A DNA stretch of 64,000 bases from Paramoeba atlantica (lineage: Eukaryota; Protista; Discosea), in contig CDRNVI010000003.1 in NCBI GenBank assembly GCA_977017575.1, positions 1 through 64,000 on the forward strand, read 5' to 3'. The translations under genes and the position numbers were made by a program. Positions 2,729 to 58,216 of the stretch are shown here, one piece after another. Position 1 is the stretch's first letter; each line of letters opens with the position of its first letter. Under the pieces are notes generated by a model. The model saw nothing but the letters and a program-made list of their open reading frames with translations, was not told where the DNA came from and ran no database searches.

Positions 2729-3795
2729 CACACCCCCGCCAAAAAGTATTGTAATTTATTAGTATCGACCACGAATATTTGGTCGATACTAATAAATACA
2801 ATACTTTTTGTAGATTTTCACGAGTTGCTACTGGCTTCCAAAATCATCATTCCACATGATGTTCTCAGCTCAGTATCTTAGAGTGAGGCCGCCATGAATA
2901 TTGCGATGAGCGGGTTTGAACTCGCCGTCTGAGCACCATGTGCTTCAAACTTTGAATTCTTGCCACTCCGCCACCTGCGATCCCACTCCGCCACCTCCGC
3001 TCCCACTCCGCCACCTCCGCTCACTCCGCCACCTCCGCTCCCAAATCGCTCCGAACCCAATCGCGTAGTGCGAATACAAATTTCTCCAAAGAGGACACGA
3101 GGAATTTCCGTCACATCCCAAGATGCAGTTACTTGACGCGCACGGAGTTCATTCATTGCCTGGATAATAGAAAGTACCTTGTTTTCACGACAAAACACGC
3201 TTCGACACGGCGGTTGCCTTTTTGACAGCAGTATCAATAGAATTACGGGCGAACAGACGAGACACATAGTCATTGTACAGAGCCTTTGCTCTTTGCTTTA
3301 GTCCGGAAATGACAAATTGGTCTGCAGGTTGGTAAACGTGCGTCAGTTTTGGAGCGATAAAGAGAACACCACAATTTTTTTCAGTGAGCCATTCCGTTAT
3401 TTTTGAGTGCTGGGAAGCTTCATCAATGATTAAAAGAGCCTTGGCATTGTATTGATTAGACGACTCTCGGTCATCCTGCAAAATACCTATGAATTTGTCC
3501 ATAAATTCTTTCCACGTTTCCCGGCTTTGAAAGTGCGTATCCTTACGAGAACATTGGAGCACTCGAGGGTCGTCTCCTACGTTAACAAATTTCTTTTGAG
3601 TGCCCTTGTGGATGAATTGCATGAGCTTTACATCACCGGAAGCATTAGTAAGAAGAGTGCAAGTGAACCCCTCACGATCAGAACGTACCGCAACAGTTCG
3701 GTTTTCTCCTTTTTGAATTCTTTCCGAAGTCCATTTCTGAGAAAAAAAAATTTCTGAGAACTACCGTTGTCCGAAAGAGAGAAACAGACTCGATA
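2729..3795 (-). mobile_element. pogo-family DNA transposon, C-terminal half plus terminal inverted repeat
   Basis: ORF 3185-3622 has LLIIDEASQH and IAPKLTHVYQPADQFVISGLKQ (DDE_1-type motifs); TA+CACACCCCCGCCAAAAAGTATTG at 2727-2751 is the inverse of 43891-43913. Confidence 0.85.
2880..3041 (-). mobile_element. 5' fragment of SINE-like element with its 5'-terminal 20 nt reiterated four times
   Basis: Matches the head of the 19015-19410 copy; unit GAGCGGAGGTGGCGGAGTGG occurs four times (2963-3041). Confidence 0.85.
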
Positions 3796-9722: not shown

Positions 9723-10086
9723 TTCAAAAAAACAAAGGTCTCCAAAAAACAAAGGTCTTCAAAAAAAACAAAGGTCTTCAAAAAAACAAAGGTCTTCAAA
9801 AAAACAAAGGTCTTCAAAAAAACAAAGGTCTTCAAAAAAACAAAGGTCTTCAAAAAAAACAAAGGTCTTCAAAAGAATCAAAGGTCTTCAAAAAAACAAA
9901 GGTCTTCAAAAAAACAAAGGTCTTCAAAAAAAGAAAGGTCTTCAAAAAACCAAAGGTCTTCAAAAAAACAAAGGTCTTCAAAAAAACAAAGGTCTTCAAA
10001 AAAACAAAGGTCTTCAAAAAAACAAAGGTCTTCAAAAAAACAAAGGTCTTCAAAAAACAAAGGTCTTCAAAAAAACAAAGGTCTTC
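9723..10086 (-). repeat. Tandem array of ~20 x 18-bp unit (sense GACCTTTGTTTTTTTGAA) at the 5' end of family-C LINE
   Basis: Array ends ~14 nt before the ATG at 9708; A-run length and a few bases vary between units. Confidence 0.95.
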
Positions 10087-10087
10087 C

Positions 10088-13050
10088 AAACTTTCCCTAT
10101 ATTTCTCTGTTCGGGCTGACGCTACAAGAGCTTGGCTTTATTTTCTTAAAGAACAAAATGTATTCTACTCAGATATTCACATATTGGAACAGAGAATAGA
10201 GGATTTGGTGAACGAAAGCAAAAGAATACTTGAAGAAACAACTGTTGTCAACAATGCCATTTCAGTGGCAGCTCCACTATTAGCTCATAAACGAAACGCG
10301 ATAGAAGAAGAAAAGCCGGAGGTAGAAAACGTTTTACTATGTGAACCTCCCCAACGAAATGCTGAGGATGAGATAGTCGAAAGCCTAACAAACCTCATAA
10401 AAGGTAATGACCAAAGAAGGCACCATGCCAGAATTCACGTTACAAGTGCAGCTAACGAGTTTAACGAGAATGACAATATTTTGGGAATGGGGTTTCCAGA
10501 TCTTTTTCCAGTTCTTTCTGAAGCGTCTGCCAATCTCCTAAAGCGCCCCCTTACTCCTGACAGCGGCCTGAAGCATTTGTTGTTGCAAAAAGACCCTCGT
10601 TGGTGCAGAAACGGAAATTTTGGTTTCTTACATTGGGATCAAATCAGGCGCCATTCCTTAGCTCGAAGTGTGAGGGTCAAGCCCAATATGTGGAAAAAAG
10701 CAAAGAAACTTTTGGAAAAAGAAAATATAATTGTGCAGTTGAAGGAGGCACAGAAGGACCCTCAACGAAAGGAAAATCGTAAGCTTCTGTTGGAAGCATG
10801 CAATGTCCTGCATATTGTAACTCGTGATGTTCCATTTTCCGACGCAGCTCGGAATGCGTGCTTTAAACAAATGGTGGCAATTCATGGGTTCATGGGTCAT
10901 CCGACACTCTACGTCACCGTATCCCCATGCGATCCAGATATGAAAATTACCCTGGAATACCTATACGCCTCTTCAAAAAGCGTGCAAGAGGATTTTCTAA
11001 TTGACGATGCGTACCAAAGAGTACAAAAAGTGCGAGATCACCCTGCATATGCAGCGCAAACATTTCATTTAATTATTGATGCGTTGCTTACCACGATATT
11101 TGGTGTAGTCCCGCACAAACGATTTAAAAAATCAGGCCAATCGGTCAGTGCTATTTCAGAAGAAATGCCCGTCGGAATTTTCAAGATTATGAAGGGAATG
11201 TTTGGGGTGTTTGAGACACAAGGTAGAGGAAATTTGCATATGCATATTGTTCTATGGGGCATCCCTCTCGCTGAGTATGCTTCCGAAAAGATTCATATGG
11301 AATCAGAAAGAAACAGTATAAGCCAATTAGTTTCTGATTGGATGACGGTTTCCGTGCCGTGGGATAAAGGAGATACGAGAAGCGTCGGGGGAAGAGTGGG
11401 GTTAGAGGCATTCCCGCCATTCGATAATCAGAAAGCCATGGATATCAGAGAGTATCGAGTTACATCAACTGTGCAACAGCATGTGCATACGGAGAAATGT
11501 TTCAAAAATATAGGTGTAGCGCCAACAAAATGCCGATATGCATACCCACGGCAGGTTACGCCATTGAATGCTTTTTATTATTTAAAACAATCAAGTTCTA
11601 CACCAGGAAAAGTAGTGGCAAAAACAGTTTCAGAAAATATGGCGGCCCGTGCTGAAAGTACAGAGCCCTCTTTCTTTGGTTATATGTATGTCACCCGACT
11701 TTCGTCCTCTATTGTACTTGCCTAAGAGATCATCAAGGGATAAAAATACTGCAGAATACAATTCGATAACGTCCTGCCTCCTGGGATTCAATACAAATGT
11801 TGTTTTTCTCGGATCAGGTTGCATTGCAGCGATAACTACTTTCTATCTTTTTAAATATTTATCCAAAAACTTGCTTGATATCAATACTTGTATTGGGGCA
11901 GTTCAAGCAGCAAAACACAAAGAAAAATACGGAAGCCGAAGATCGCACGAGAATTCATCAGACAAGTTGCTCTGCAATAGGCTTGGAAATAGTCAACTAG
12001 GAATGCAAGAAGTGTCGGCCCAGCTGGCCATGTATTGTTGCCTTGGTTATGAGTCGGAAGAATGCAGCCATATAGTTTCCTACTTGGATGTACGGCAGGC
12101 ATCTAAATTAATGGTCAAAGGCGTTGGAGGAGTACAGGAAGACGGAACAGAGACTGATAGCGAAATATCAGACAATGAAGGCCTCTCTGATGTGATTGGC
12201 GGAGGTGGCGAAGTGGCAAGAATTCAAAGTTTGAAGCACATGGTGCTCAGAAGGCGAGTTCAAACCCGCTCATCGCAATATTCCTGGCGGCCTCACTCTA
12301 AGAGGCTGGGCTGAGAACCGACTAGGCCCAGTACTCGGAGGACCGTCCCGGACCCTCCCCTCAGGGAACCAGCTCCCTTACACGGCTTACACCTCTTGGG
12401 TAAGCCGTGTTGACGTACAGTTCGTCGACGCAGCGTGTTGGCAACAGCACGTTGGTGCCGCCTTGGACAAGAGGAAACTGGTAGAGGACGTCGGCCTCGG
12501 AACTTCCAAATCTGTCTGTGAAGGGTCTGGCTTGCCAGTGACCATCCGGAGCAATCCGGAATGATTTGGATTGGATTTTTTTTTTTGGATTTGGAGGGAA
12601 CCAGCTCCCTTACACGGCCCACACCTCTTGGGTAAGCCGTGTTGACGTACAGTTCGTCGACGCAGCGTGTTGGCAACAGCACGTTGGTGCCGCCTTGGAC
12701 AAGAGGAAACTGGTAGAGGACGTCGGCCTCGGAACTTCCAAATCTGTCTGTGAAGGGTCTGGGCTTGCCAGTGACCATCCGGAGCAATCCGGAGTGATTA
12801 AAAAAAAAAATTAGATGTGATTGTAAGGGATGACGGGTCTACTGAAATGTGCAGTAAGGCTCTGGACTATTACTTTCGAGGCACAGAACTTGAGTTCTTA
12901 AATTTTTACCTTTACGACGCCATTATTGCGAGAGTTCGCATATCATCAGTGAAAATAATTGGTAAAACCAAGAAAGGGAGATCAAGAAACACTACATTCG
13001 CATTCAAGAAAGGACATCCGCTGATTGAAACTTTTACTCAGCGAATTTCT
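10088..13050 (+). pseudogene. Helitron Rep (HUH endonuclease) region, disrupted
   Basis: GHPTLYVTVSP, FETQGRGNLHMHIVLWG, QQHVHTEKC...CRYAYP, YNSITSCLLGFNTNVVFLGSG...YLFKYLSK, DYYFRG...HPL; frameshift near 11720 and a SINE dimer inserted at 12199. Confidence 0.9.
12199..12813 (+). mobile_element. Head-to-tail dimer of SINE-like element (full copy + 5'-truncated copy) with poly(A) and 10-bp TSD
   Basis: GATGTGATTG at 12189-12198 and 12814-12823 flanks the insert; A run at the 3' end; the Helitron reading resumes after it. Confidence 0.9.
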
Positions 13051-16479: not shown

Positions 16480-16700
16480 ATGCGCCCCTTCTCAAAAGAT
16501 AAGAAAATGTCATATAGGCCAAGCGACTGGAAAGAGTACTTGAAGATACTCAAGGAGTGTAGTGAGGGAAAAAAGGTGGAAGGAACGGAATACCCTCCGG
16601 AAATTTGCTCTTGCTTAATTAAGATCATCAATAACTTGAGAATCGGAATTCAGGATTCTTCCTTTGAAGAACCAAGATGCATGATCAACATGTTTCCAAA
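16480..16700 (+). pseudogene. Possible degenerate LINE RT N-terminal fragment
   Basis: PFS...GKKVEGTEYPPEI...LIKIINNL loosely resembles the GKAPGxDxIPxE region of the other RTs. Confidence 0.35.
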
Positions 16701-16704
16701 TCAT

Positions 16705-17095
16705 CAAATTCAAATCATTCCGGATTGCTCCGGATGGTCACTGGCAAGCCAGACCCTTCACAGACAGATTTGGAAGTTCCGAGGCAAACGTCCTCTACAA
16801 GTTTCCGCTTTTCCAAGGCGGCACCAACGTGCTGTTGCCAACACGCTGCGTCGACGAACTGTACGTCAACACGGCTTACCCAAGAGCAAGCCGGGTAAGG
16901 GAGCTGGTTCCCTGAGGGGAGGGTCCGGGACGGTCCTCCGAGTACTGGGCCTAGTCGGTTATCAGCCCAGCCTCTTAGAGTGAGGCCGCCGGGAATATTG
17001 CGATGAGCGGGTTTGAACTCGCCGTCTGAGCACCATGTGCTTCAAACTTTGTGTTCTTGCCACTCCTCCACTCCTCCACACTCCGCCACTCCTCA
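16705..17095 (-). mobile_element. SINE-like element copy with internal deletion
   Basis: Near-identical blocks to 19015-19410; partly reiterated 5' head at 17060-17095. Confidence 0.85.
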
Positions 17096-18087: not shown

Positions 18088-18129
18088 TGATTATATATAT
18101 AAAGATACAGTTTCTGTACCTTGTTGGTA
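18088..18129 (+). ncRNA. Spliced-leader (mini-exon)-like sequence, 5' end non-canonical; SL RNA pseudogene or retrocopied SL
   Basis: TATATAAAGATACAGTTTCTGTACCTTGTTG|GTA: exact kinetoplastid/diplonemid SL core ACAGTTTCTGTAC plus TTG|GTA at the canonical spacing; the usual AAC(T/C)AAC start is absent. Confidence 0.6.
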
Positions 18130-18985: not shown

Positions 18986-19014
18986 CTCTATACCAAGGTC
19001 TTGAGCGCACGCTT

Positions 19015-19410
19015 CGAAAAAAAAAAAAAAAAATCCAAATCATTCCGGATTGCTCCGGATGGTTACTGGCAAGCCAGACCCTTCACAGACAGATTTGGAA
19101 GTTCCGAGGCCGACGTCCTCTACCAGTTTCCGCTTGTCCAAGGCGGCACCAACGTGCTGTTACCAACACGCTGCGTCGACGAACTGTACGTCAACACGGC
19201 TTACCCAAGAGGTGTAAGCCGGGTAAGGGAGCTGGTTCCCTGAGGGGAGGGTCCGGGACGGTCCTCCGAGTACTGGGCCTAGTCGGTTATCAGCCCAGCC
19301 TCTTAGAGTGAGGCCGCCAGGAATATTGCGATGAGCGGGTTTGAACTCGCCTTCTGAGCACCATGTGCTTCAAACTTTGAGTTCTTGCCACTCCGCCACC
19401 TCCGCTCTCC
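19015..19410 (-). mobile_element. Full-length ~390-nt structured SINE-like element
   Basis: Starts GAGCGGAGGTGGCGGAGTGG, ends ATCCGGAATGATTTGGA + T run; near-identical to the TSD-flanked copy at 12199. Confidence 0.88.
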
Positions 19411-21230
19411 GCACGCTTCGGCAGGAGACGGGAGCCCAGCTTTTGAACGAAAGTTCCATTTGATGAGCTCCACGTAAATAGAAGAGTGGCGAATTTGATG
19501 TCCAACCAGGCGGGAACGACTTACGAGATGTATGGTTTCGAAACGGAAGAAAGAACTGGTTTCTTCCACGTAAATAGAAGAGTGGCGAATTTGATGTCCA
19601 ACCAGGCGGGCACGACTTACGAGATGTATGGTTTCGAAACGTGGTGTCTTATTGTACAAGGATTCAAGTGGATAACATTTCTGGTGTTCAACTACGCCCA
19701 TCGCATCGCATACAATGCGTCGCATGTGATTTATCTGGACATCTGCACGCCGAATTTGGGATTTAGAGAGATAAAGCGACGAAGAACCATAATTTACAAT
19801 AGGGTAAACTAAGGTATCAAAGAGGCGAAGCTTGGTTTTCGTTCCCAAGGGAGAAATCCATATGCCACGCAATTTGGAGAAGCATAAGATGCTTCTCAAA
19901 ATTCTGCCCAGAACCATGATAAAAAGGTAGGGAGCAAACACATCGCCTTGAAGTATGCCTGATGTAATGGGGAATGATGCAGTTTTGCCGAAAGGCGTCC
20001 GCACCAAGCCCTCCAAATCAGAATATAATGACATTGTAAGTCGTCTGAGCATAGGTCCAACGTGGAAGGCTTTTAAGGCGGCTTCGATAGCAGCATGGGA
20101 TACGGATGGAAATGCGCTGGCGAAGTCCACAAAGGCAAGGTAAAACTTGTCACCTCTTCCTGATTTCGAGAGCAACTCATTTAGCAACACCTGGGCTCCA
20201 TTGGTGGAGCGTTCCGGTCGAAAACCGAACTGGTTTTCTCGAAGAACGCGCTCCACTACAGGTCTTACTCTGTTTAGTATCATCGCATTAATGAGTTTTA
20301 CTATTTTGTTAACCAAACAAATGGGTCTCCAGTTTGCCAGCTCTGCTGTATCCCCTTTTTTAGGGACCGGTACTTGCACGGCCTGTTTCCATACATTGTG
20401 AGTTTTCACGCTTTCATAGGCTTGATTTATCATGTCAAGAACCATTTTTCGGAGTTTATTGTTATCGAAAATGCAGCAGTAGGCTTCCGCCGGGATATCG
20501 TCTAGACCTGGGGCCCGCCCTTTGCCGAGCTGATGCGCCGCTGTAAGCATTTCATGTTCCCCGAAAATTTTATCATCTATTTCACCTATGTAATTATCGG
20601 CTTCAGGAAATATCATTTCCGTGCTGCTAGAACCTCGATTGGCCATTTTGGCGAAAAATGCTCTCACAGTTTCAAGCCTTTTTCTTCTGGATTCACCTTC
20701 TCCGAAATCAAACGTCTTTCTCCTGATACCACAGATTTCCCTTAAGTAATTCCATGGGCTTGAGTGATTTTTCCGTAGTTTGGATTCTAGACTATTACAT
20801 TCATTTTCAATGACGTTTTCAATGTGAGTTTGGTGATTATGAACAAGTTTTTGAAAGCATTTTTTGGAGCGACTGGCTTCGAACACCTTTCGTAGTGTGT
20901 TGGTATTTTCCTGAACCTCTGTCTGTTGCAAAAAGTCTGATTCTATCTTTCCTGTGTCTGAGAGAAACTTCTCCGCCGCCTTGCGCATTGTTCCCGTAAG
21001 CACCTCCCATATTTCACCCTGTTCACCCCCTTCAGCGACCACCGCATCAACAGCATTAGCAGTGTATTCATTAAAAGCTTTCTTAGATTCGTCAGACCGC
21101 AGTTTTTGCCAGGATATCGCAGTGCTGCCTTTCTCTGCGGGGGCTTTCCATTTGATCGCAAGGTGAACTGCAAGGTCATCGCAAGGTCGTCGCCGCGGCA
21201 AAAAGACATAAGGCTCCGCCTTCTGCCTTT
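19410..21230 (-). pseudogene. Family-D LINE linker + RT fragment with internal deletion and a ~75-bp tandem duplication (19470-19640)
   Basis: GKGRAPGLDDIPAE, WRPICLVN, QFGFRPERST, DFASAFPSV, GILQGDVFAPYLF; the YADD segment is deleted. Confidence 0.9.
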
Positions 21231-21450
21231 TTGCCTTGCGCCTCCACCTTCCTCTATGGCCTTGCGTGTCACACACTTCCAGGTAAAGTTTGGCCTTTGT
21301 AGGTGTATTTGCGGAATATCGAGGGGAGGACCGTCCCGGACCCTCCCCTCAGGGAACCAGCTCCCTTACCCGGCTTACACCTCTTGGGTGAGCCGTGTTG
21401 ACGTGAATTCGTCGACGCAGCGTGTTCGCAACAGCACGTTGGTGCCGCCT

Positions 21451-21562
21451 TGATTTCTTCCTATTAAGTTGATTTCTTCCTATTAAGTTGATTTCTTCCT
21501 ATTAAGTTGATTTATTCCTATTAAGTTGATTTCTTCCTATTAAGTTGATTTCTTCCTATTAA
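21451..21562 (+). repeat. Tandem array of 6 x 19-bp unit (GTTGATTTCTTCCTATTAA) at the 5' end of family-F LINE
   Basis: Six units readable, one with a substitution; directly precedes the AEASGPF-type N-terminus. Confidence 0.92.
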
Positions 21563-23156: not shown

Positions 23157-23283
23157 GTTGGTGCCGCCTTGGGAAAGCGGAAACTGGTATAGGACGTCGG
23201 CCTCGGAACCTCCAAATCTGTCTGTGAAGGGTCTGGCTTGCCAGTGACCATCCGGAGCAATCCGGAGTGATTTGGATTGTTTT

Positions 23284-25793: not shown

Positions 25794-27358
25794 ACCACTT
25801 TTTGTTTTAAGACCACTTTTTGTTTTAAGACCACTTTTTGTTTTAAGACCACTTTTTGTTTTAAGACCACTTTTTGTTTTAAGACCACTTTTTGTTTTAA
25901 GACCACTTTTTGTTTTAAGACCACTTTTTGTTTTAAGACCACTTTTTGTTTTAAGACCACTTTTTGTTTTAAGACCACTTTTTGTTTTAAGACCACTTTT
26001 TGTTTTAAGACCACTTTTTGTTTTAAGACCACTTTTTGTTTTAAGACCACTTTTTGTTTTAAGACCACTTTTTGTTTTAAGACCACTTTTTGTTTTAAGA
26101 CCACTTTTTGTTTTAAGACCACTTTTTGTTTTAAGACCACTTTTTGTTTTAAGACCACTTTTTGTTTTAAGACCACTTTTTGTTTTAAGACCACTTTTTG
26201 TTTTAAGACCACTTTTTGTTTTAAGACCACTTTTTGTTTTAAGACCACTTTTTGTTTTAAGACCACTTTTTGTTTTAAGACCACTTTTTGTTTTAAGACC
26301 ACTTTTTGTTTTAAGACCACTTTTTGTTTTAAGACCACTTTTTGTTTTAAGACCACTTTTTGTTTTAAGACCACTTTTTGTTTTAAGACCACTTTTTGTT
26401 TTAAGACCACTTTTTGTTTTAAGACCACTTTTTGTTTTAAGACCACTTTTTGTTTTAAGACCACTTTTTGTTTTAAGACCACTTTTTGTTTTAAGACCAC
26501 TTTTTGTTTTAAGACCACTTTTTGTTTTAAGACCACTTTTTGTTTTAAGACCACTTTTTGTTTTAAGACCACTTTTTGTTTTAAGACCACTTTTTGTTTT
26601 AAGACCACTTTTTGTTTTAAGACCACTTTTTGTTTTAAGACCACTTTTTGTTTTAAGACCACTTTTTGTTTTAAGACCACTTTTTGTTTTAAGACCACTT
26701 TTTGTTTTAAGACCACTTTTTGTTTTAAGACCACTTTTTGTTTTAAGACCACTTTTTGTTTTAAGACCACTTTTTGTTTTAAGACCACTTTTTGTTTTAA
26801 GACCACTTTTTGTTTTAAGACCACTTTTTGTTTTAAGACCACTTTTTGTTTTAAGACCACTTTTTGTTTTAAGACCACTTTTTGTTTTAAGACCACTTTT
26901 TGTTTTAAGACCACTTTTTGTTTTAAGACCACTTTTTGTTTTAAGACCACTTTTTGTTTTAAGACCACTTTTTGTTTTAAGACCACTTTTTGTTTTAAGA
27001 CCACTTTTTGTTTTAAGACCACTTTTTGTTTTAAGACCACTTTTTGTTTTAAGACCACTTTTTGTTTTAAGACCACTTTTTGTTTTAAGACCACTTTTTG
27101 TTTTAAGACCACTTTTTGTTTTAAGACCACTTTTTGTTTTAAGACCACTTTTTGTTTTAAGACCACTTTTTGTTTTAAGACCACTTTTTGTTTTAAGACC
27201 ACTTTTTGTTTTAAGACCACTTTTTGTTTTAAGACCACTTTTTGTTTTAAGACCACTTTTTGTTTTAAGACCACTTTTTGTTTTAAGACCACTTTTTGTT
27301 TTAAGACCACTTTTTGTTTTAAGACCACTTTTTGTTTTAAGACCACTTTTTGTTTTAA
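25794..27358 (+). repeat. Homogeneous tandem array of ~87 x 18-bp unit (GACCACTTTTTGTTTTAA) at the 5' end of the intact family-B LINE
   Basis: No variant unit seen over ~1565 bp; ends 16 nt before the ATG at 27375. Confidence 0.97.
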
Positions 27359-27374
27359 TTTACTTTAGAACAAA

Positions 27375-30300
27375 ATGGCGGATGCTTCCGGCACGCATGG
27401 GGGGACAGAGGTTTTTGAAACCCTTATGCGGACCAAGCGTGGTCGGGGGGTAGTCTTTCGTTCGCCTGAACGAGAGGGTCCTGCTAAACTCCGCCAGAGG
27501 GCGGTCCGGTCGCTTTGTAAATTTATACGTGTTGGGGCTTTTATCCGTGTTGCATGGAGGTATGAAACCTCTTCTGAAGTCTTTATTTGGGATGGTGAAG
27601 TTGTGGGTGGGGTGCCGGCGAGTCTACAAAATTTCGACTGGGCAAATACAAGTCCTATTTGGCACAATCACTTATCTGGTGCATTTCGTGTTCGATACGC
27701 AAAAAGGCCGAACACAACCTTACCCTTCCCCCCTTATTCGCAAACTGGCGTAGTGCTTTGTGCAACGCAGGTGAGGAACCCGGCGCGGGCAAAATGGAAG
27801 AGCAATCGGCACCGCCCTCGACCACAATGGGCGTCGACTGGCAAACACGCCCAACAAGATTCGGAGAACCACAAAGGTTCCGCTGAGAAGGAGAGTACGA
27901 CCGTCGCCACACTAAACGTTACAACGTTAAAGCTAGAAGGGGAAGATGAATTTGCACTTCGAAGATGCGCCCGTCTGAATGAGGTGCTTGCCTTCATGCA
28001 CGAAAAGGGGGTTGGCGTCATGTGCCTTCAGGAGACCAGGCACAAATTCTTGAAGGGGAACCATGAGGATGGAATCCTCTACAGAAAGGTTGAAAACCTA
28101 GGGGAGTGTTTTCACATATATCTGCAGTCGGCCGACGAACGTGATTCTTATAACGGCATGGCAATAATTAGTAGATGGCCGTTTCAAAAAGTCTGGATGG
28201 TTAGCAAAAGGGTCATGGGAGCGGAGTATCCCCTGGAAGATGGGAAGGGCACACTGTTTAATGTCTATTCCCCAACGCGGGACTCCTTAGAAGCCGTTCA
28301 TGCGGCATTTCTGGGGGACTTGGGCAAGGCTTGTCGCGAGGTCAAGGCTCACGAGAGGCGTCGGCCTTTATTGGTAATGGGTGATTTCAATGCACCACTA
28401 ACGCTGGTAACAAATCCAACCATGGATCCTCCAGCGATCTCTCAGCTTAAAGGCCTACTATGCTCTATTGGATGCAAGTCGGCACATACTCTCTGCCCGA
28501 GTAAAAGAAAATGGACATGCGAGTTGCCGGGCAAGAGGAAGGGGAACTTAGACAATCGCGGGAATCGAACGGAAAGAAAATTAGGGAAAATGAACGGAGA
28601 TACGCAAACATGTGAAACGCAAGGTTTGGATCTACAAGCAGATGCCATAGGACAAGAGAGCATTTTGAAGAGGGATAGGGATAATGAGGGGGTAGGGGGG
28701 AAAATTTCTAGGAGCCAGGAAGATAAAAGAAACAAGATGGGAAAACACAAGAAGGATGACAACAAGGTGCGGAGACAGCTTGATCATATACTGGTTTGCG
28801 AAAGGTTTTCCTCTAGCATTGGGCGTCACAAAGTCTTAAAGGCGCCTGTTCCTACGGTACATTGTGTCGTGATGGCGGATGTAAAAATTAAGTGGCGTTC
28901 TAAACGACCAAGCGGGCAGAGCAGAGTGCCATGGGCCAGGCTAGGGGACGAGGAGAGGAAGGCTTCCTTCCAAAACTCAGTTTGGGACGAGGTTAAAAGA
29001 GAAGGAGAGATTACATGGGAAAATTTATCAGAAACAATGGTTCACACTGCAGAAAAACTATCGAGAAAAGGAGCAGCGACACCGCAAGCGCAATTAATGG
29101 CAGAAACACCGATGAAAATTAATACGGAAACAAAATCGTCTCAAATTTCAGGATTTCGCGACTTGTTTCTGCAAAGCAGAAAACCAGACCACTTCAAAGA
29201 AGTTCTAAAAGAGCACGGAACAGAAATTGAGGCACAAATCCAAAAAGAATGTTCCGAGATTGAATCTGGTTTAAGGAAACATCGGTCTAATCCGTGGCGC
29301 ACGCTGCGGAGGATTTGCGGTTTATACAGGGACACCTTTCGCATAGAGACCTCATCGACGAGAGAGACACTTCATATTGTGAAGGATTTCTTTGCTCGTA
29401 TGGGCTCCGATGATCGTGGAGATAAGAACATTGCCTTCGAAGCGGTGACCTCCATTAAAATACCGATAAATGATGATATCTTTTCCATGGAAGAGCTAGA
29501 AGATGGAATAAGCCGGCTCGCACGCAACAAAGCGCCTGGAATAGACCAAATCCCTGCAGAAGTACTTTCGATTATCACGGAACACAAGGATCTGAGAAAC
29601 GTACTGTTAAATATCATCAATGAAGTTCACCGTTCAGGGGTTTCGCCTGCGTCCTGGAAATTTGTCCTTCAGGTTCCTATTCCTAAAAAAGGCGACCTGA
29701 CACAAATTTCGAACTGGCGCCCAATCTGCCTCGTCAATAGCGCGGTAAAATTAATGAACGCAATGATTCTTCGAAGAATGAGACCAGCCATTGAACCGTT
29801 TCTAAGGGATAGTCAATTCGGATTTCGCCCGGAAAGGTCCACAGCAGGAGCGCAGATAATACTTAATGATGTGAAGATAAGGTCGTCGCGCAACAAGAGG
29901 GGGGTCGCAGTTGCATTCATGGATTTTGCCAAAGCCTTTCCTTCGGTATCTTTTTATGCAATCCGTGCTGCTCTTAAAGCTTTTCACGTCGGATCAGCGC
30001 TCACTAGTATGATAATGTCAGTGTATTCCAATCTAAGAGGCATAGTCAAAACACCGTACGGCAATACGGAATCTTTCCCCATTGAAACAGGAATTCTCCA
30101 GGGAGATGTTCTTGCTCCTTATTTGTTTGTGCTTGTTATTGACAGAATTCTTCATAAAGCGCTCGATAACAAACCTCTAGGGATTCTGTTGAGGAGCAGC
30201 GGGACAAAAAGTAGGGGAATTCAAGAATTTCGAGTGAAGGACATTGATTACGCAGACGATATTGCTCTTCTGGCGGAGACAAAACATGAAATATCCGAAA

Positions 30301-31976
30301 TGATAGAAGCTACGGCTAATGAAGCAAAATCTGCCAATCTAAGGGTTGCTGTGGGAAAAAATAAGACTGCGTGGATGGCCTTCGGGAAGGTTCCGGGGGG
30401 AACAAGAGAACTTCGGGCGGGATCACTGGGAAAGATTCCTCTCGTGGATTCCTACCGACATCTTGGTCACCTTCAAGATGTTACGGCAGCATCCCCCATC
30501 AAAGATCGACTGAGATTAACATGGGCAGCTTTTCGCAAGCTTAATGGAATCTGGGCCTCACCACTGAGTGCTGCTACGAAATTGCGCCTATTTGATTGCC
30601 TAGTCTATCCAATATTGACGTTTGGTGCTGCATCTCTTTATCTTTCTAACAAAATGCTTCGGCAAACGGAAGTGGAGGTAAACATAATGAGGCGATTTGC
30701 TTGCAACTCGGCTAAACTTGATGATTTCGGCCACTGTTACCCGCTAGAGGCGCTGTATCTCGGTACACCTCGCTTTGCGACTGTTCATCGCGTTGCCCGA
30801 GCTAAACTTGTTGGCCACATGCTGAGGCACTCGACCACTTTTCGCGAGCTTGTTCAATGGAATACTAAAGAAAGAGCACGAAGTATTTCCCCCAGCGAGG
30901 CAAGTTTTAACGATCTAGGTATTACGCTTGAACAAGCTCTTGTTTACTCCCAGGATCGAGAACACTGGCAAAAGCTTTGCGACAATCTCCGACAAAAACT
31001 TGAGCCTCTTCCGGAGTACGAAGTATTACGGTCTTCGAAATGGAAAACCAAATATGGTCAAGCACTGAAAAGCAATAGCTCTTATGAATTTCAATTTGTG
31101 GAAGAAGGTCCAGAACCGTTTCCTATGTTTACAGGAGAAGTTCACATGTATATTGATGGCTCTGTTCGACAGATGCGAGGGTCAACGGAACACATGGCAG
31201 GTGCAGGAGTAGTTTTACGAATGAACGGCATGGAAGATGAATATTACTCTATAGCATTAGACGCCGAAACAGCTGATAGAGCTGAGATTGAAGCAATGAT
31301 AGAAGCGCTGGACAGAACACCAGACAAGGCGGAAACAGTTGTTGTCCACACGGATTCATTCTATGTATGGAATTTCTTCCATCTTACACGTTTGCGAAGG
31401 AGAATCATCGGGTACAACAACATACCGAACGGCAAAATCCTTGAAAAACTGGATAAGGAAATCCGAACGCTTCAATCCAGAGGCACAAGGTGTTACGTGT
31501 GCAAAGTTAGATCCCACAATGGGAACAAGCACAACGAGAAGGCAGACACATTGGCGATTGCAGGGTCACGCAAGATTGCTCCAAACCCAGAAACCAAGAG
31601 GAGAAAGACATTGACAAATGCTCAGGCTCAGAAAGGGGAGAGTAGGGGGAGGGTTAGTTCAAAAACTATTCAGACTATGAATCGTCCTCGAAAAAATTGT
31701 AGCCAAATTCCTAAGCCATTAGGTAAGAGACGAGATTACTTCAAGACTGTGGTAGGTGATCCCCTCCCCAAAAAGGGTACCTCGCCTCCTGTAGATGCCG
31801 GAATGAATTCTACCGGGGAGAATGAATGCTTGCCTGAAGAACCTGACTCCGAAAATAAAAACTTGCACGAAGGACGTTCCACGCCCGGTTCAAAGGCCAA
31901 GGAGCATAAAAGTGCAGGTTCACCGGATAGTAAGACGTTGAAACGCAAAAATGACAGATGTACTCTTAACCGATGA
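27375..31976 (+). CDS. Intact 1533-aa non-LTR retrotransposon polyprotein: N-terminal domain, APE endonuclease, RT, RNase H, basic tail
   Basis: LNVTTL/LQETR/NVYSPT/MGDFNAP/LDHIL (APE); WRPICLVN, QFGFRPERST, DFAKAFPSV, GILQGDVLAPYLF, DYADDI (RT); YIDGS, RAEIEA, HTDS, KVRSHNGNKHNEKADTLA (RNase H); (ATTGG)n tail at ~31988-32008. Confidence 0.97.
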   Translation: MADASGTHGGTEVFETLMRTKRGRGVVFRSPEREGPAKLRQRAVRSLCKFIRVGAFIRVAWRYETSSEVFIWDGEVVGGVPASLQNFDWANTSPIWHNHLSGAFRVRYAKRPNTTLPFPPYSQTGVVLCATQVRNPARAKWKSNRHRPRPQWASTGKHAQQDSENHKGSAEKESTTVATLNVTTLKLEGEDEFALRRCARLNEVLAFMHEKGVGVMCLQETRHKFLKGNHEDGILYRKVENLGECFHIYLQSADERDSYNGMAIISRWPFQKVWMVSKRVMGAEYPLEDGKGTLFNVYSPTRDSLEAVHAAFLGDLGKACREVKAHERRRPLLVMGDFNAPLTLVTNPTMDPPAISQLKGLLCSIGCKSAHTLCPSKRKWTCELPGKRKGNLDNRGNRTERKLGKMNGDTQTCETQGLDLQADAIGQESILKRDRDNEGVGGKISRSQEDKRNKMGKHKKDDNKVRRQLDHILVCERFSSSIGRHKVLKAPVPTVHCVVMADVKIKWRSKRPSGQSRVPWARLGDEERKASFQNSVWDEVKREGEITWENLSETMVHTAEKLSRKGAATPQAQLMAETPMKINTETKSSQISGFRDLFLQSRKPDHFKEVLKEHGTEIEAQIQKECSEIESGLRKHRSNPWRTLRRICGLYRDTFRIETSSTRETLHIVKDFFARMGSDDRGDKNIAFEAVTSIKIPINDDIFSMEELEDGISRLARNKAPGIDQIPAEVLSIITEHKDLRNVLLNIINEVHRSGVSPASWKFVLQVPIPKKGDLTQISNWRPICLVNSAVKLMNAMILRRMRPAIEPFLRDSQFGFRPERSTAGAQIILNDVKIRSSRNKRGVAVAFMDFAKAFPSVSFYAIRAALKAFHVGSALTSMIMSVYSNLRGIVKTPYGNTESFPIETGILQGDVLAPYLFVLVIDRILHKALDNKPLGILLRSSGTKSRGIQEFRVKDIDYADDIALLAETKHEISEMIEATANEAKSANLRVAVGKNKTAWMAFGKVPGGTRELRAGSLGKIPLVDSYRHLGHLQDVTAASPIKDRLRLTWAAFRKLNGIWASPLSAATKLRLFDCLVYPILTFGAASLYLSNKMLRQTEVEVNIMRRFACNSAKLDDFGHCYPLEALYLGTPRFATVHRVARAKLVGHMLRHSTTFRELVQWNTKERARSISPSEASFNDLGITLEQALVYSQDREHWQKLCDNLRQKLEPLPEYEVLRSSKWKTKYGQALKSNSSYEFQFVEEGPEPFPMFTGEVHMYIDGSVRQMRGSTEHMAGAGVVLRMNGMEDEYYSIALDAETADRAEIEAMIEALDRTPDKAETVVVHTDSFYVWNFFHLTRLRRRIIGYNNIPNGKILEKLDKEIRTLQSRGTRCYVCKVRSHNGNKHNEKADTLAIAGSRKIAPNPETKRRKTLTNAQAQKGESRGRVSSKTIQTMNRPRKNCSQIPKPLGKRRDYFKTVVGDPLPKKGTSPPVDAGMNSTGENECLPEEPDSENKNLHEGRSTPGSKAKEHKSAGSPDSKTLKRKNDRCTLNR

Positions 31977-32624
31977 AAATCGGTCTTATTGGATTGGATT
32001 GGATTTGGAATCTCACTTCACCTCTACCTGATGAGTGCAATCAACGGGTACAATGGCATGGCATTTTTGAGCACTAAACCTCTATCTGTTCAGAAGATTA
32101 GCGATCGCATTATGAGTGGACACTTCATTCTAGGTGAAACGAAAGCCTGCATTTACAACGTCTATTCACCTACAGCGAAAGCTAGCAAATCGACGCAACA
32201 AAGTTTTGACGAAGACTTATTCGATGCACGGTATGACGATGATAGTATGGTAAGAATCATTAGTGGAGATCTAAATTCGTCGCTACTCAACCCAGGGGGG
32301 AGAAAATGTTAAACAAAGCGTGCAAAACAGTTACGAAAGCTACCATGCTCGCTTGGAGCTCAATCTGTACATGAAGGCTGTTGTGCAAGAAGAAAATGGA
32401 CGTATAGGTTTCCTAAAACGCGTCGGTATCCAGAGGGAATGACCAAGCAACTTGACCACATCGTTGTTAACAAAAGGTTTTTCTCTTCTATACGACCCAC
32501 GAAATGCCACATCGCACCAATACCTACGAGACATTGTGCTTTGACATCGAACTTCAATTTTCGATGGAAAATTCAAAAACTGTCTCAACAAAAACCTTTT
32601 TGGGAGGCATTGAAAAATGATGAA

Positions 32625-34925: not shown

Positions 34926-35210
34926 CCCGTCACATAATAACACCACGCACTGTAACGTATGCGATGCCCGATCGCATAAGATGCCCGATCGCATATTTAT
35001 TTTATGCGTGCATATTTTTCCCGTGCATTTCGCGTACTTTGTGCCATTGGGGGTACCGCATCGTCTGGCCCCTCAAACTGATAAACAATGTTTCTAATGG
35101 AAGCTTTGCAAGGATGCAGGCAACCTAATCTGTTAAATGCGGCAAAAACAACATACGGACATTTTTTATAAGAACACACTTTTTATAAGGAACACACCTT
35201 TTATAAAGAA

Positions 35211-35407
35211 CAGATTGAAAGGGGCGAGGGAGATACGAAGCAACAGGCGTGGCAGATTCCCAATGAAAAGAAATGGTATCTCCCCGCACGAGAAAAGCCT
35301 TCGCGCTTTCTAGCTCGGAGACAAACTTCGTGCGGGAGATACCATTTCTTTTCAGTGGGAATCTGCCACGCCTGTTGCTTCGTATCTCCCTCGCCCCTTT
35401 CAATCTG
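35211..35407. repeat. Near-perfect ~200-bp foldback (arms ~80 bp) containing GAGGGAGATAC
   Basis: CAGATTGAAAGGGGCGAGGGAGATACGAAGCAACAGGCGTGGCAGATTCCC... is mirrored with 2-3 differences. Confidence 0.9.
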
Positions 35408-40654: not shown

Positions 40655-42363
40655 TTCAAAAAAACAAAGGTCTTCAAAAAAACAAAGGTCTTCAAAAAAA
40701 CAAAGGTCTTCAAAAAAACAAAGGTCTTCAAAAAAACAAAGGTCTTCAAAAAAACAAAGGTCTTCAAAAAAACAAAGGTCTTCAAAAAAACAAAGGTCTT
40801 CAAAAAACAAAGGCCTTCAAAAAACAAAGGTCTTCAAAAAACAAAGGTCTTCAAAAAAAAAAAGGTCTTCAAAAAAACAAAGGTCTTCAAAAAAACAAAG
40901 GTCTTCAAAAAAACAAAGGTCTTCAAAAAAACAAAGGTCTTCAAAAAAACAAAGGTCTTCAAAAAAATAAAGGTCTTCAAAAAAACAAAGGTCTTCAAAA
41001 AAACAAAGGTGTTCAAAAAAACAAAGGTCTTCAAAAAAAACAAAGGTCTTCAAAAAAACAAAGGTCTTCAAAAAACAAAGGTCTTCAAAAAACAAAGGTC
41101 TTCAAAAAAACAAAGGTCTTCAAAAAAACAAAGGCCTTCAAAAAACCAAAGGTCTTCAAAAAACCAAAGGTCTTCAAAAAAACAAAGGCCTTCAAAAAAA
41201 CAAAGGTCTTCAAAAAAACAAAGGCCTTCAAAAAACCAAAGGTCTTCAAAAAAACAAAGGTCTTCAAAAAAACAAAGGTCTTCAAAAAAACAAAGGTCTT
41301 CAAAAAAAACAAAGGTCAAGAAAACAAACATCTTCAAAAAACCAAAGGTCTTCAAAAAACCAAAGGTCTTCAAAAAAACAAAGGTCTTCAAAAAAACAAA
41401 GGCCTTCAAAAAACCAAAGGTCTTCAAAAAACCAAAGGTCTTCAAAAAAACAAAGGTCTTCAAAAAAACAAAGGTCTTCAAAAAAACAAACATCTTCAAA
41501 AAACCAAAGGTCTTCAAAAAACCAAAGGTCTTCAAAAAAAAAAGGTCTTCAATAAAACAGAGGTCTTCAAAAAACAAAGGTCTTCAAAAAAAAAAAGGTC
41601 TTCAAAAAAACAAAGGTCTTCAAAAAACAAAGGTCTTCAAAAAAAAAAAGGTCTTCAATAAAACAAAGGTGTTCAAAAAAACAAAGGTCTTCAAAAAAAC
41701 AAAGGTCTTCAAAAAAACAAAGGTCTTCAAAAAAACAAAGGTCTTCAAAAAAACAAAGGTCTTCAAAAAAACAAAGGCCTTCAAAAAAACAAAGGTCTTC
41801 AAAAAAACAAAGGTCTTCAAAAAAACAAAGGTCTTCAAAAAAACAAACATCTTCAAAAAAACAAAGGTCTTCAAAAAAACAAAGGTCTTCAAAAAAACAA
41901 AGGTCTTCAAAAAAACAAACATCTTCAAAAAAACAAAGGTCTTCAAAAAAACAAAGGCCTTCAAAAAACCAAAGCTCTTCAAAAAAACAAAGGTCTTCAA
42001 AAAAACAAAGGCCTTCAAAAAAACAAAGGTCTTCAAAAAAACAAAGGTCTTCAAAAAAAACAAACATCTTCAAAAAAACAAAGGTCTTCAAAAAAACAAA
42101 GGTCTTCAAAAAAACAAAGGTCTTCAAAAAAACAAAGGCCTTCAAAAAAACAAAGGTCTTCAAAAAAACAAAGGTCTTCAAAAAAACAAAGGTCTTCAAA
42201 AAAACAAACATCTTCAAAAAAACAAAGGTCTTCAAAAAAACAAAGGTCTTCAAAAAAACAAAGGTCTTCAAAAAAACAAAGGTCTTCAAAAAAAACAAAG
42301 GTCAAGAAAACAAACATCTTCAAAAAACCAAAGGTCTTCAAAAAACCAAAGGTCTTCAAAAAA
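40655..42363 (-). repeat. Tandem array of ~95 x 18-bp unit (sense GACCTTTGTTTTTTTGAA), heterogeneous, at the 5' end of the second family-C LINE
   Basis: Same unit as 9723-10086 with recurring variants (GGCC, AACC, CATC); probable 9-bp TSD ACTCTCTCA at 37291-37299 and 42364-42372. Confidence 0.95.
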
Positions 42364-42374
42364 ACTCTCTCAAG

Positions 42375-43147: not shown

Positions 43148-43911
43148 TTCTGAGAACTACCGTTGTCCGAAAGAGAGAGACAGACAAAAAATTCATCAGC
43201 ATTGTATGTAAACGGTTTAGAAACTTGCCCTTTGTACTTTTCTAGGTCAGAAAAAAAACCAACCGATGAGTCCACTACCTGCTTTGGGGTGGCCGTTCGA
43301 TCAGTAGTGACGAATACGTATTCCATTCTGCTGCATCCATTCCTTAGCCCACGAGACAGAAAATTTCAGCCTTCCACCGTCGATTGTAGTAGAGCCTGGG
43401 GTGCTCTTTTCTTTGATGCCACGCGCGGCGCCCGCCACTAAAGATGCACGTACGGAAGTTCCAGTTTCTCGAAGCTTTAGAAAAGCACTGAGTAAAAGTT
43501 CATTTTCAGATGGAGAAAGCATAGGGACACGACCTCGATTTCCAACTTTATTTAATGAATTCAAGCCTTTGTAGAAACTTATTGTTGAGGCAGAAACGTT
43601 GCGCTTGAATTTTTTCTCGAACGTAACCTTCACGTTGTCGCGGTTGAAGCTTCCACGGGTCTGCGCGAACAACCATTCGCGGTGATCATCACTCAGCTGC
43701 CCTCGAGATGAAGTTGCGTCTTGGATAAGCTCTGAAACGACGCTCTCCACGATCAAGTGGCCGCGTATATCAGAACCCATTATGCAAATTTCTGGAAAGC
43801 TCGAGAAAAAAACTAAAATTCTGGTCAAAACTCAAAAAAATGGTCGATACTAATAAATACAATACTTTTTGCGTCGGCCATTTTTGTGGACAATACTTTT
43901 TGGCGGGGGTG
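43148..43911 (-). mobile_element. pogo-family transposon, terminal inverted repeat plus N-terminal half (CENP-B-like HTH, first catalytic D)
   Basis: LKFSVSWAKEWMQQNGIRIRH, TYNADEFFV; TIR 43891-43911 followed by TA. Confidence 0.85.
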
Positions 43912-53433: not shown

Positions 53434-55784
53434 CACCCCAGTCAAATTTTATTGTCGCTAATATTCATGGTACAAAAATTATTGAATTTTTAATTAAAAA
53501 TGGTCGTTTTTTGCCTGCGTTTTATTTATTTTTATTTTTTGTCAACCGCTCGAGATGGTCAACCAGGACATTGCTCAGCATTTTTTGGTAGCGAATTCGT
53601 TCCATCAGACGAAGAAAAGTCAGCCGTCCTCGACAGGTTTAGCGCCGGACGAGCGCGAATGGCTTTTTGACAACACTCGAGGTGCATGTAAAAATGCACT
53701 AGTTATGGAGAGATTTTTGGATCAATTTGGACGAGTAATTTCGGCTGCTTGCGTTTCTTAATATAAGGGCATGCGCTCGCTAGAAAACATCGGTAGTCGC
53801 GGCCGGCGTGGCCTACTTACGGGAGAGGAATCTTCACTTGTCCAAGCTTTCGACAAAATGAGGGAGCAAGCTGTCCCAGTGTACGCGGCTCTTGTAGATA
53901 GTGTGGCCCGCGGTATCAAAGAGCAATCTTCCCCGAAATCCACATCCCTAAAGAGGGGTCCTCTGAAGTTTTCGCTATCATGGGCAAAGGACTGGATGAA
54001 GCAAAATAACATTCGTGTCCGCCACGCTACTAGCGATCGAACTGTTACGCCGAATGAAGTTGTTGAGGCATCTAAAACATTCTTTTCACAGCTTGAAAGC
54101 TATAAAAATGGTTGCGAAAAAGGGCTTGTGTTTAACACAGACGAATTCTTTGTGTGTCTGGGATTAGGACAAGCAAATGCCACTTGGACCTGGGAACGCA
54201 TTGATCCAGGCGAGTCCCGCACAATTTCAGTTCGTCGTGAAAAGCAAGGTTTCACTTGCAACGTTCTTTCACCTGCAGCTGGAGAAATCAAAATGTTACA
54301 GTCTATATTCCAGGGAACGAGTCGCGTATTCGTCAATGTTGGTAGCGACCCACGTGTTCTACAATGTGCCCCGAAAGGATCTCATTTTCAAGACGCCTCG
54401 ACGTGGGCAACTTTTTTGAGTCGCTTTAAGGAGAGACTTGCCTCCGAACGTGAAGCTATGAAGAAGCCCGTTGCCCCCGCCCTTTTGATTATTGATGAAG
54501 CCACTCAGCATAGTGGTACTGATGAGATTCTTATTGGCTCTTCTTGCGACGTAGTTCGTATTCCCAAGAAAATGACGCATGTCTTTCAACCTGCAGATCA
54601 GTTTGTAATCTCTGGCCTAAAACAACGCGCTATTCAGCTCTACAACGATGATGTATCCCGCATCTTTGCGCGTTCCGACCTCAATTCAGCCATCTCCAAC
54701 GTTATTTGCACATCGCGAACACTTTTCCGAGAGAAAAAAGTGTCGTACATTGTGCAGGCTATGCAAGAACTTCCCCAAGCTCAGATTATGGCCTCCTGGG
54801 AAATAACCGAAATTCCAGTGGTCTTATTTGGCAGCAAAAAAACCGACCGTCACGTCTCGATGCCTACAAGCATTTGCAAACTCATTTACATATGTCTAGT
54901 GGTGCGATTTTCTTGGATGATGAAGGTTCCGACGAAATTAATACCTCATCCATGGGGAACGCAGAAGGGGACGTCAATATAATAGAAGAGAACGAAAATT
55001 CGATAGCAAGCGCCACAATCGAAAGAAGCGCACCTGGAGAAAAGCGAAAACGCGGCCGACCTCGTAAGGTACTCTCAACTGAAGAACTGGAACTCCAGAG
55101 ACGAGAGGCTGAAGATATCACGAATCTACGCCAGCGACTTCGTGGAATGACGCGAAGACAAAAGGAGCGCTATAAATCCGCTCAGAGTCTGCCGTTTACT
55201 CCTCTCTCATTGTACGGAATCGGTCCTAAAGTTTAGTTGCTGTGACTCCCCTTTTGATGAGCACCTCCAAAATATTTTTGAGTGTATTGAATTTTCTGAT
55301 GGTATTGAATTTTCTGATGGTATTGAATTGTGAAAGTGCGCAATAACATTTACTCAGATTTTATGCTGATATTTTGTGGGTTTTTTTCCATGTTTTGTTC
55401 TATCGGTCTACACTTTTTCCCCGCACTAGATATTAAAATGAAATATTTTAACGCGCGCTCTTTTTTGTTATTCACCTTTGTACGCAACATTAGCTGCATT
55501 GTTTCAATACATGCATTGCTTTTATCTACCAATAAGAGTACAATGATAAATTCTCTGTTGGAATGCACCCTCGCACCATTTCACTCCTACCTGACGAAGG
55601 CCATGAGACGAGCAACCCGCCAGCCCACGGTAGTCAATAAGAACGTGAAAACACTACGACGGGCGCTTAATTTCCCACAGCCCAAGATTTGCGCATGTAC
55701 ACATTTCTACAAAAATTGAATTTTAAATTAAAAGTTGTCCGGCTTCGACACCAATTAAAAATTCAATAATTTTTGGCGGCAGTG
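53434..55784 (+). mobile_element. Near-complete pogo-family transposon with two frameshifts; C-terminal AT-hook
   Basis: LKFSLSWAKDWM, VFNTDEFF, LLIIDEATQH, IPKKMTHVFQPADQ; KRGRPRK in ORF 54706-55236; ends TA+CACCCCAGTCAAATTTTATTG and inverse TA+CACTGCCGCCAAAAATTATTG. Confidence 0.87.
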
Positions 55785-55924: not shown

Positions 55925-56250
55925 TCACAACACCCTTGGGTGTCCAGGCCCTCCAATGTGAATAATAAAAAATGTGAATAATAACTGTATTTGTGAATAA
56001 TAACTGTATTTGTGAATAATAAAAAATGTGAATAATAACTGTGAGGGGGGTTTACTTTTTTGTCTATCTGATGAACCTTCACCTGCACGCTCGGCCGATA
56101 AGGCAGACTTTCCTTGTTCATCCAGAGCTCGCCACATGTTCTTAATGAGGAGAGACATGGGACGCTCATCGTCTGGATGAAGAGCTGTCTTGAAATGATA
56201 AAGCGCGAGGAAACGTGATGCACGAATATAGGCATCTTGCGGCCCCATTT
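55925..56250 (-). pseudogene. Possible HMG-box fragment
   Basis: FLALYHFKTALHPDDERPMSLLIKNMWRALDEQGKSALSAERA fits the HMG-box helix pattern (W-x-x-L-x-x-x-x-K). Confidence 0.4.
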
Positions 56251-57235: not shown

Positions 57236-58216
57236 TACATTTAGAAATTCTTCCCAATAGTGGGTGTACCCCCCTTTATATCCTTGCGTTTCTTCAATTC
57301 TTTACTTTTGGTAGCCCATACATACATAAAAATTAGTCATCCGCTGCCATCCAGTGCCATCCAGATCTTTATAGTGTCCATTCGTTCCTGATCTTACGTT
57401 TCTCATGTCTCTGCTGTGACTCATTGCGAATGTCCGGTTGGGCTGCTCATCTGAAGGTTGGACGCCTTCATCGGATAGATTTTCCGATGAGTGTTCGGGA
57501 GCGCCTCTTGAGTCGTAGGAACTGCTTTCATCGCGTTTTTGTAATTTGCTTCAGTGCCATTTTTCAAAAATTTGAGAGATTAAAAGCCATGTAAATAATA
57601 AAAGTGTGTAAATATTAAGTGGGAGGGGGGTTTATTCTTTTCATCTCCCTCGCTCACTTTAGCCTGTTTTTTTGATGAAAAAATAAGGAAAAATGAGAAT
57701 CCATTCAATTTTTACGAAAAAAAGAGCTGCCAACGTGCACCAGGTCAATTCTGAAAATAGTGAAGAAAATTCGCAAAGAAGTGCTTTTTTACGCGGCAGT
57801 GTGCAACTGACCATTCTCAAAATTGGGACTTTTACTGTATACAACCACCGCAATTATCCAGAAATAAATGCTATCGTAAATACCTCTTCACCTGGAAACA
57901 TGGTTCAGGCACACAACATTGTCTTCACCCGGTACATTTGCCCAAATGGTTTCCACGTAAACTATAACTTAACCACGTAAACATTAACTTAACCGCAGAC
58001 TGTAAGATAAAATTCGCAATGGCAAGAAAAATTCCCAGACGCCAGAATCGTGCTGTATTCGCACGGACAGACGATAAAGTGAAGGCGTGTGCGGAAAGTT
58101 TCTACAGAAGATTTGCGAAAGCTCGTTCAATGGACTCTGTTGCAAAGCTCGATTTTTCTTGTGTAAAATCTTTAGATCCTAGGTGTAAATATTCGACGTT
58201 ACACGCTGTGTACTGC

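Follow-up and report, generated by a model that had tools for sequence, protein, structure and literature searches.

Template jumping, untemplated nucleotide addition and chimeric retrocopies are all familiar phenomena (PMC2104539, PMC8594491, PMC8857657, PMC6789731). In template jumping by LINE reverse transcriptases, the enzyme passes from the 5' end of one RNA to the 3' end of another, as in chimeras of the U6/L1 type, the tripartite MGL pseudogene of Magnaporthe (PMC2104539), and R2 and related elements (PMC8594491, PMC8857657). Telomerase and DRT2-type enzymes copy a short stretch of RNA repeatedly into tandem DNA (PMC12039810), tandem units stand at the 5' end of retrotransposons as the monomers of mouse and rat L1 and as other LINE promoter repeats, and there are tRNA-derived SINEs with LINE-like tails. 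Of all steps in target-primed reverse transcription, the least understood is what a LINE enzyme does when it runs off its template. In the literature that we searched, we found template jumping and chimeras, and no published tandem re-copying of the terminal 16-20 nt of a template.

We analysed a window of 64,000 nt from Paramoeba atlantica (contig CDRNVI010000003.1, positions 1 to 64,000), together with genome-wide searches (45.7 Mb, 248 contigs), and describe what appears to be a natural record of that step. Taken as a whole, we think the following explanation is probably correct: (i) the element concerned is a young SINE with a tRNA-like head, ~390 nt long and with roughly 200-260 intact heads, which is moved by resident LINEs; and (ii) the multimers at its 5' end are a by-product of the reverse transcriptase at the 5' end of the RNA template, and are neither inherited nor a feature of the SINE RNA.

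The SINE family, its LINE partners and a four-unit copy

The reference full-length SINE lies on the minus strand at 19017-19409. It has a single 5' unit and, after GGATTTGG, an oligo-T tail, and is flanked by an 11-bp duplication, CGCACGCTTCG, at 19006-19016 and 19410-19420. A second full-length copy (12199-12586, plus strand) has one unit that lacks its first 2-3 nt, and a third (16696-17092, minus strand) begins, immediately after the duplication AAACATGTTGA, with a jumble of partial units (17060-17092). A sequence-only reading of the window had described these heads as a single unit at 19015-19410, a slightly truncated one at 12199 and partial units at 17060-17095, and the sequence bears it out. 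The copy at 12199 is followed head to tail by a second, 5'-truncated SINE (12595-12799; joint region 12587-12799). Similar joins, to SINE copies that are often 5'-truncated, occur at C71:11118, C50:103236 and C60:4210; they could be serial template jumps or repeated insertions at tails. A SINE 3' fragment on the plus strand (1446-1547; SINE positions 287-372) ends in GGAATGAT and 16 A, as against the usual TTGGATTTT tail.

A first look through the genome gave 495 SINE candidates, of which 40 scored at 97-100% identity, and there are 192 exact matches to a 16-nt motif of the SINE head. The element is short, non-coding and dispersed, with duplications of 6-14 bp at most inspected loci. In its head, TGGCGGAGTGG matches the A-box consensus and GAGTTCAAACC is B-box-like; judged by these motifs, the SINE most likely has a pol III promoter of its own. 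ARAGORN found no tRNA in the window, and no Rfam tRNA match reached the gathering threshold. An SL-like motif, CAGTTTCTGTAC, occurs at ~18108-18119 of the window and a complete SL RNA adjoins one SINE copy (L056), both of which fit a kinetoplastid-type host.

By Pfam, the window's LINEs have AP-endonuclease, reverse transcriptase and RNase H domains, and they too carry tandem 5' arrays. LINE A (plus strand) begins with 87 copies of an 18-nt unit, all 100% identical (25794-27358; Tandem Repeats Finder and sequence), which abuts a 16-nt leader; its open reading frame (27375-31976) encodes all three domains (PF03372, PF00078 and PF00075), and its tail (31975-32010) consists of a hairpin and (ATTGG)3 ATTTGGA. 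LINE C has an 18-nt unit repeated 20 times at 9723-10090 (minus strand) and a second array of 95 units at 40655-42365. LINE B has a 19-nt unit repeated six times at 21450-21562 (plus strand), and sits within a SINE copy that is split into 21325-21452 and 23157-23283. With a fourth family found outside these three, unit length is 18-19 nt in four LINE families. AT-rich units in the LINEs amount to 20-95 copies, whereas the SINE and 5S rRNA units described below are GC-rich and present in 2-8 copies. The SINE 3' end, a hairpin and ATTTGG/ATTGG repeats with T runs, resembles the LINE A tail by eye, without alignment statistics. This resemblance makes the window LINEs likely partners of the SINE, and LINE A probably represents the type of enzyme that mobilises it. 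The window has further short tandem arrays whose period is 18-20 nt (35159-35212, 55284-55329, 55973-56022 and 57953-57994); the units of some are 100% identical, and none of these arrays was linked to an element.

The minus strand at 3040-2963 reads as four head-to-tail 5' units of the SINE, of 20 nt (3040-3021), 18 nt (3020-3003), 20 nt (3002-2983) and 20 nt (2982-2963), confirming an earlier report of four tandem units at 2963-3041. Tandem Repeats Finder placed the array at 2963-3043 (period 20, 4.2 copies, 90% matches, score 134). A 20-mer pattern with up to three mismatches matched the window six times, compared with none in 100 shuffles: four matches at 2963-3040 (minus strand), one at 12197 (plus) and one at 19388 (minus). 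Each of the four units contains the A-box-like TGGCGGAGTGG, and the innermost differs from the others by two mismatches. The fourth unit is followed by CAAGAATTC, and the remainder of the tRNA-like head (2861-2962, minus strand; SINE positions ~21-127) has the B-box-like GAGTTCAAACC ~45 nt downstream of the last unit. In a BLAST comparison with the reference SINE, query positions 4-125 aligned at 92.6% identity over 122 nt.

At position ~127 the head is fused to a short, 24-nt tail-like end (GGAATGATGATTTTGGA; 2837-2860, minus strand), so that the copy consists of head positions 1-127 and this end, with ~230 nt deleted internally. A search for the deletion junction gave a single match genome-wide, which makes this the sole copy of such shape. 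It is an old, internally deleted and unique SINE copy; the earlier description of a SINE holds for its head, and does not hold for a standard copy. We considered a separate short SINE family and rejected it, as the junction is unique and a full-length copy at C3:74226 has the same body variant. No convincing target-site duplication was found in the upstream flank, a DDE_1 relic, or in the downstream flank, which we call repeat X. The former is a fragment of a pogo/Tigger-type transposase directly upstream of the copy (3185-3622, minus strand; Pfam E = 9e-8). Repeat X (2740-2810) adjoins the copy, has a ~30-bp hairpin, and also occurs at 43841-43871 and at L028, where a SINE was inserted into it with a 12-bp duplication; it may be a LINE tail, a MITE or a foldback element. 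In so old a copy, any number of the four units may date from insertion. Its age, the two differences in the innermost unit and the failure to find a duplication count against our explanation, and the evidence that follows comes from other copies.

Frequency, period and position of the SINE arrays

A second A-box-like unit stands 9-15 nt upstream in 40 of the 192 exact heads, including two 9-nt slips; a reversed-pattern control gave none. A stricter pattern, two A boxes 4-20 nt apart, found 42 unit junctions at ~23 places, again with none in the reversed control. We also counted by eye, using the 55 nt upstream of 183 listed heads in 80-letter rows and merging copies that share flanks, and found multimers at ~27 of ~114 distinct loci. 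The full sequence was read at 60 loci; further cases (C21:753463, C51:48558 and C32:9528) come from 80-letter rows of the pattern search and were classed by eye. A single unit had been taken as the normal state of the SINE, and this is true of only ~75-80% of copies.

The arrays have a period of 18 nt at ~14 loci and 20 nt at ~9, with single cases of 17, 19, 24, 31 and ~39 nt. Most contain two or three units, some four or five, and one eight. They lie within the target-site duplication at all 11 loci where this could be read (L006, L027, L034, L037, L041, L042, L051, L052, L053, L057 and window 16696-17092), starting 0-9 nt after its upstream copy, and their units are in phase with the 5' end of the RNA. 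Two checks proposed with the earlier reading, that expansions equal the terminal 18-20 nt and that they start at the junction, therefore held, apart from the rarer periods. Expansions of arbitrary length or position, which would have spoken for ordinary slippage, were not seen: no insertion of 6 nt or more was found in SINE positions 21-391 among 45 distinct full-length copies, contrary to the arbitrary position and phase expected of a minisatellite.

The arrays recur across subfamilies, and their period tracks the subfamily leader. GA-, AA-, AC- and GG-led copies have 20-nt units; GGGCGG-type copies have 18-nt units with a GG overlap. The restart point is thus constant, after ..GGAGTGG and ~18-20 nt from the RNA end. 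A SINE restart fixed by sequence, and not by strict distance from the RNA end, counts against our explanation. At least four body haplotypes contain both multimers and single-unit copies with the same leader (e.g., L005 vs L027; L003 vs L006). We rejected a model in which an 18-nt core receives random untemplated letters: single-unit copies of the same subfamily have the same leaders (GA, GG, AA and others), which are therefore templated. Unit joints have 1-2 extra letters, which are the same throughout an array but vary from one array to another. Such constancy is not predicted by independent jumps with random untemplated addition; it fits the re-use of one template or the later amplification of a first duplication.

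Two kinds of array bear marks of synthesis by an enzyme. At L027 the outermost unit lacks its first 5 nt and the three inner units are complete, and L036 is similar; later duplication of an existing end cannot make this pattern. At C32:9528 a 38-nt upstream unit differs from the downstream copy at positions diagnostic of the subfamily, which indicates that two different RNAs were copied.

Some 5' junctions have other structures. At L002, L004, L022 and L023 the SINE 5' end is separated from the upstream duplication by 8-31 nt of unexplained filler; the filler TTCTCTTA occurs at two independent loci, and at L023 a piece of target and the first 7 letters of the insert are repeated. At C11:9844 and its paralog C24:263881 the first 26 nt of the SINE head also occur upstream of it as their reverse complement, with TA between; unlike the direct repeats, this 5' structure is a snap-back (self-templated) product.

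Could all arrays have arisen after insertion, by ordinary replication slippage or unequal exchange, with the purine-rich head and its internal 9-nt quasi-repeat as a hot spot? Paralogs do show such changes. In three pairs the difference is 9 nt, equal to the period of the quasi-repeat within the unit (including C11:274065 vs C24:3376 and C50:104113 vs C62:11714), two groups differ by whole units (four at L037 and three at L049; two and three in the two L036 copies), and L042 has blocks of identical neighbouring units. These differences imply that some units are younger than the insertion, and that slippage acts on existing arrays. As the sole cause, however, slippage is disfavoured, and we regard it as improbable that it made them all. 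The first 18-20-nt duplication would have to form with no more flanking homology than GG. All units keep phase with the RNA 5' end, no duplications occur elsewhere in the 45 copies, and neither the truncated outermost unit at L027 nor the foreign upstream unit at C32:9528 is expected from slippage. Ends of 5S rRNA and of a truncated SINE, which have no quasi-repeat, are duplicated likewise. Most paralog groups keep their unit number, and it is constant in at least seven: C87 (5 and 5), C21 (nine copies, all 3), C88 (six copies, all 2), C61/C71, C3/C30, C8/C52 and C65. The earlier claim that the multimer is made at insertion is supported by the position and recurrence of the arrays and from the 5S and truncated-SINE ends, and must be qualified for the two paralog pairs whose unit number changed later.

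Reiterated ends of other templates and chimeric joints

Template ends unrelated to the SINE head are reiterated as well. At L012 a full 5S rRNA (Rfam, 99 bits) abuts a SINE, and the duplication AAGGCGACC encloses both. The 5' end of this 5S is reiterated with a period of 18 (2.6 copies), its outer unit being truncated and joined via a 5-nt microhomology. In a second 5S retrocopy (C21:753622) the first 18 nt plus A, a 19-nt unit, occur three times. The same 5S, after TTTT, is followed at C21:753463 by an 18-nt array of the fourth LINE family and then the LINE body. At C51:48558 a 5S and TTTTT precede a SINE truncated at ~position 108, whose new first 20 nt plus AA are duplicated. The duplication TGAGCTCAGA at L056 encloses a complete SL RNA, a two-unit SINE array and the SINE body, in that order. 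The reiterated units of SINE, 5S and truncated SINE are unrelated in sequence. Since the ends of 5S and of the truncated SINE are reiterated, the units are most likely made in reverse transcription, independently of sequence. The sequence-only reading had favoured an enzymatic property over inheritance and a sequence-independent process; the unrelated template ends speak for the first, and the 5S 5' ends and the new end of the 5'-truncated SINE for the second.

The 5S partners in these fusions stop after 2-5 T, whereas genuine 5S genes, which form tandem arrays with a period of ~2.56 kb (C97, C107, C74 and C11), continue with TTTTTAAATGC. Four different SINE leaders are found at 5S-SINE joints. 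The switch after 2-5 T and the four leaders indicate that the partners were joined at RNA ends, and for the same reasons we rejected read-through of a 5S gene as the source of the adjacency. Two 5S copies at C39:717897 are joined as 5S-TTTTT-AAAAAAAA-5S. At L025 (C9:239435) the last 20 nt of a tRNA with CCA precede a SINE inside the duplication GTTTCCTTC. This tRNA fragment lies 23 nt upstream of the SINE head and differs from a similar tRNA gene (C20:581395) at tRNA position 58, which is T in the fragment and A in the gene; the T could be a misincorporation opposite modified A58, or the fragment could come from a different tRNA gene. A search with one pattern found no reiteration of the SL RNA 5' end. 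We speculate that a heavily modified cap might block the enzyme there.

These findings also bear on whether the arrays are inherited, that is, whether master SINEs with several A boxes are transcribed from an upstream unit and their progeny copy the multimer RNA. Every unit has an A box, which makes upstream initiation conceivable; the commonest array, two 18-nt GGGCGG units, is found at at least six loci; and the junction letters are constant within an array. Yet idiosyncratic arrays (AC, AA and GG leaders, the 24-nt unit, and the C4 and C21 types) are each seen at a single locus and its paralogs at most, body haplotypes vary among the loci with two GGGCGG units, and 5S rRNA and the truncated SINE show repeats that they cannot inherit. 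We therefore consider inheritance quite improbable.

It is most improbable, finally, that the repeats formed outside first-strand synthesis, whether through second-strand priming, through repair of the 5' junction by the host or through ligation of RNAs ahead of reverse transcription: 5' junctions do have fillers of 2-31 nt and microhomologies, and RtcB RNA ligation is a published route to U6/L1 chimeras (PMC6789731), but arrays occur at internal chimera joints far from the target junction (L056, C21:753463 and C51:48558) and ligation makes no tandem copies of a terminal 18-20 nt. Telomerase-like realignment does not describe the data either, as LINE A, B and C, 5S and most SINE leaders have no match between their first letters and the letters after restart, the sole overlap being GG in GGGCGG-type SINEs; and no Rfam family, hence no HDV-like ribozyme at the 5' end, reached the gathering score anywhere in the window.

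A possible mechanism and its relation to known systems

We return to the reading that the arrays are a by-product of the reverse transcriptase. The data show where the units lie, their phase and length, that they recur across subfamilies, that they do not depend on sequence, and that they also stand within chimeric insertions. During target-primed reverse transcription, the enzyme would run to the 5' end of the RNA and, in roughly a fifth of events, would copy the terminal 16-20 nt again, once or several times. The cDNA would then be joined to the target, or the enzyme would jump to the 3' end of a 5S rRNA, a mature tRNA or an SL RNA. The length of the unit may be set by the RNase H of the LINE, which would cut the template ~16-20 nt behind the polymerase site at the RNA end; the terminal oligonucleotide so released would become the next template via end-to-end jumping. 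Once a tandem existed, ordinary slippage or unequal exchange would alter its unit number.

The RNase H ruler is inferred by analogy with retroviral enzymes: HIV-1 reverse transcriptase cleaves RNA ~18 nt behind the DNA 3' end (PMC5389522). Three observations fit such a model, namely (i) the absence of microhomology at restart, (ii) the presence of RNase H in the LINEs, and (iii) longer arrays for the AT-rich LINE units than for the GC-rich SINE and 5S units. In its most specific form, an RNase H-bearing LINE enzyme would measure off the last 16-20 nt of any finished RNA, release it and re-use it as a free template, giving 2-95 identical units on LINEs, SINEs and retrocopies of cellular RNAs, with the longest arrays where AT-rich units dissociate easily. 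We offer this form tentatively, as a possibility that deserves attention although we would not bet on it.

Template ends of at least seven unrelated kinds contribute to the record: those of four LINE families, of one SINE family in several leader variants, of 5S rRNA and of a broken SINE RNA. The common unit of 16-20 nt points to a physical ruler in the enzyme. Because the SINE, most likely transcribed from its own pol III promoter judging by its sequence, and 5S show the same unit length, a property of the enzyme explains the long LINE arrays better than a ribozyme fold or inheritance. Through the arrays, SINE heads also gain additional A boxes and insertion sites acquire minisatellites of 18-20 nt.

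The SINE itself is like tRNA-derived SINEs with LINE-like tails in its A/B-box-like head, its length of ~390 nt, its lack of coding capacity, its 6-14-bp duplications and a tail that mimics a LINE. It is unlike them in its oligo-T-rich tail, its kinetoplastid-type host and its frequent 5' reiteration. The monomers of mouse and rat L1 share with these arrays the tandem arrangement at a retrotransposon 5' end, but they are ~200 bp long, are inherited promoter modules, and are absent from SINEs and from retrocopies of cellular RNAs. With template jumping by LINE enzymes, the present system shares head-to-tail fusions within one target-site duplication and few extra letters at the joints, the fusions here being 5S-SINE, 5S-LINE, tRNA(CCA)-SINE and SL RNA-SINE. 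It differs in that the enzyme usually continues on the last 16-20 nt of a template of the same kind, with arrays of up to 8 units on SINEs and 95 on LINEs. Telomerase and DRT2-type enzymes, in turn, resemble it in their tandem product, whereas here there is no dedicated template RNA and no realignment by base pairing, and the unit is whatever the 5' end of the template happens to be. If a template released by RNase H is indeed re-used, this would amount to telomerase-like tandem synthesis that needs neither a dedicated template nor realignment.
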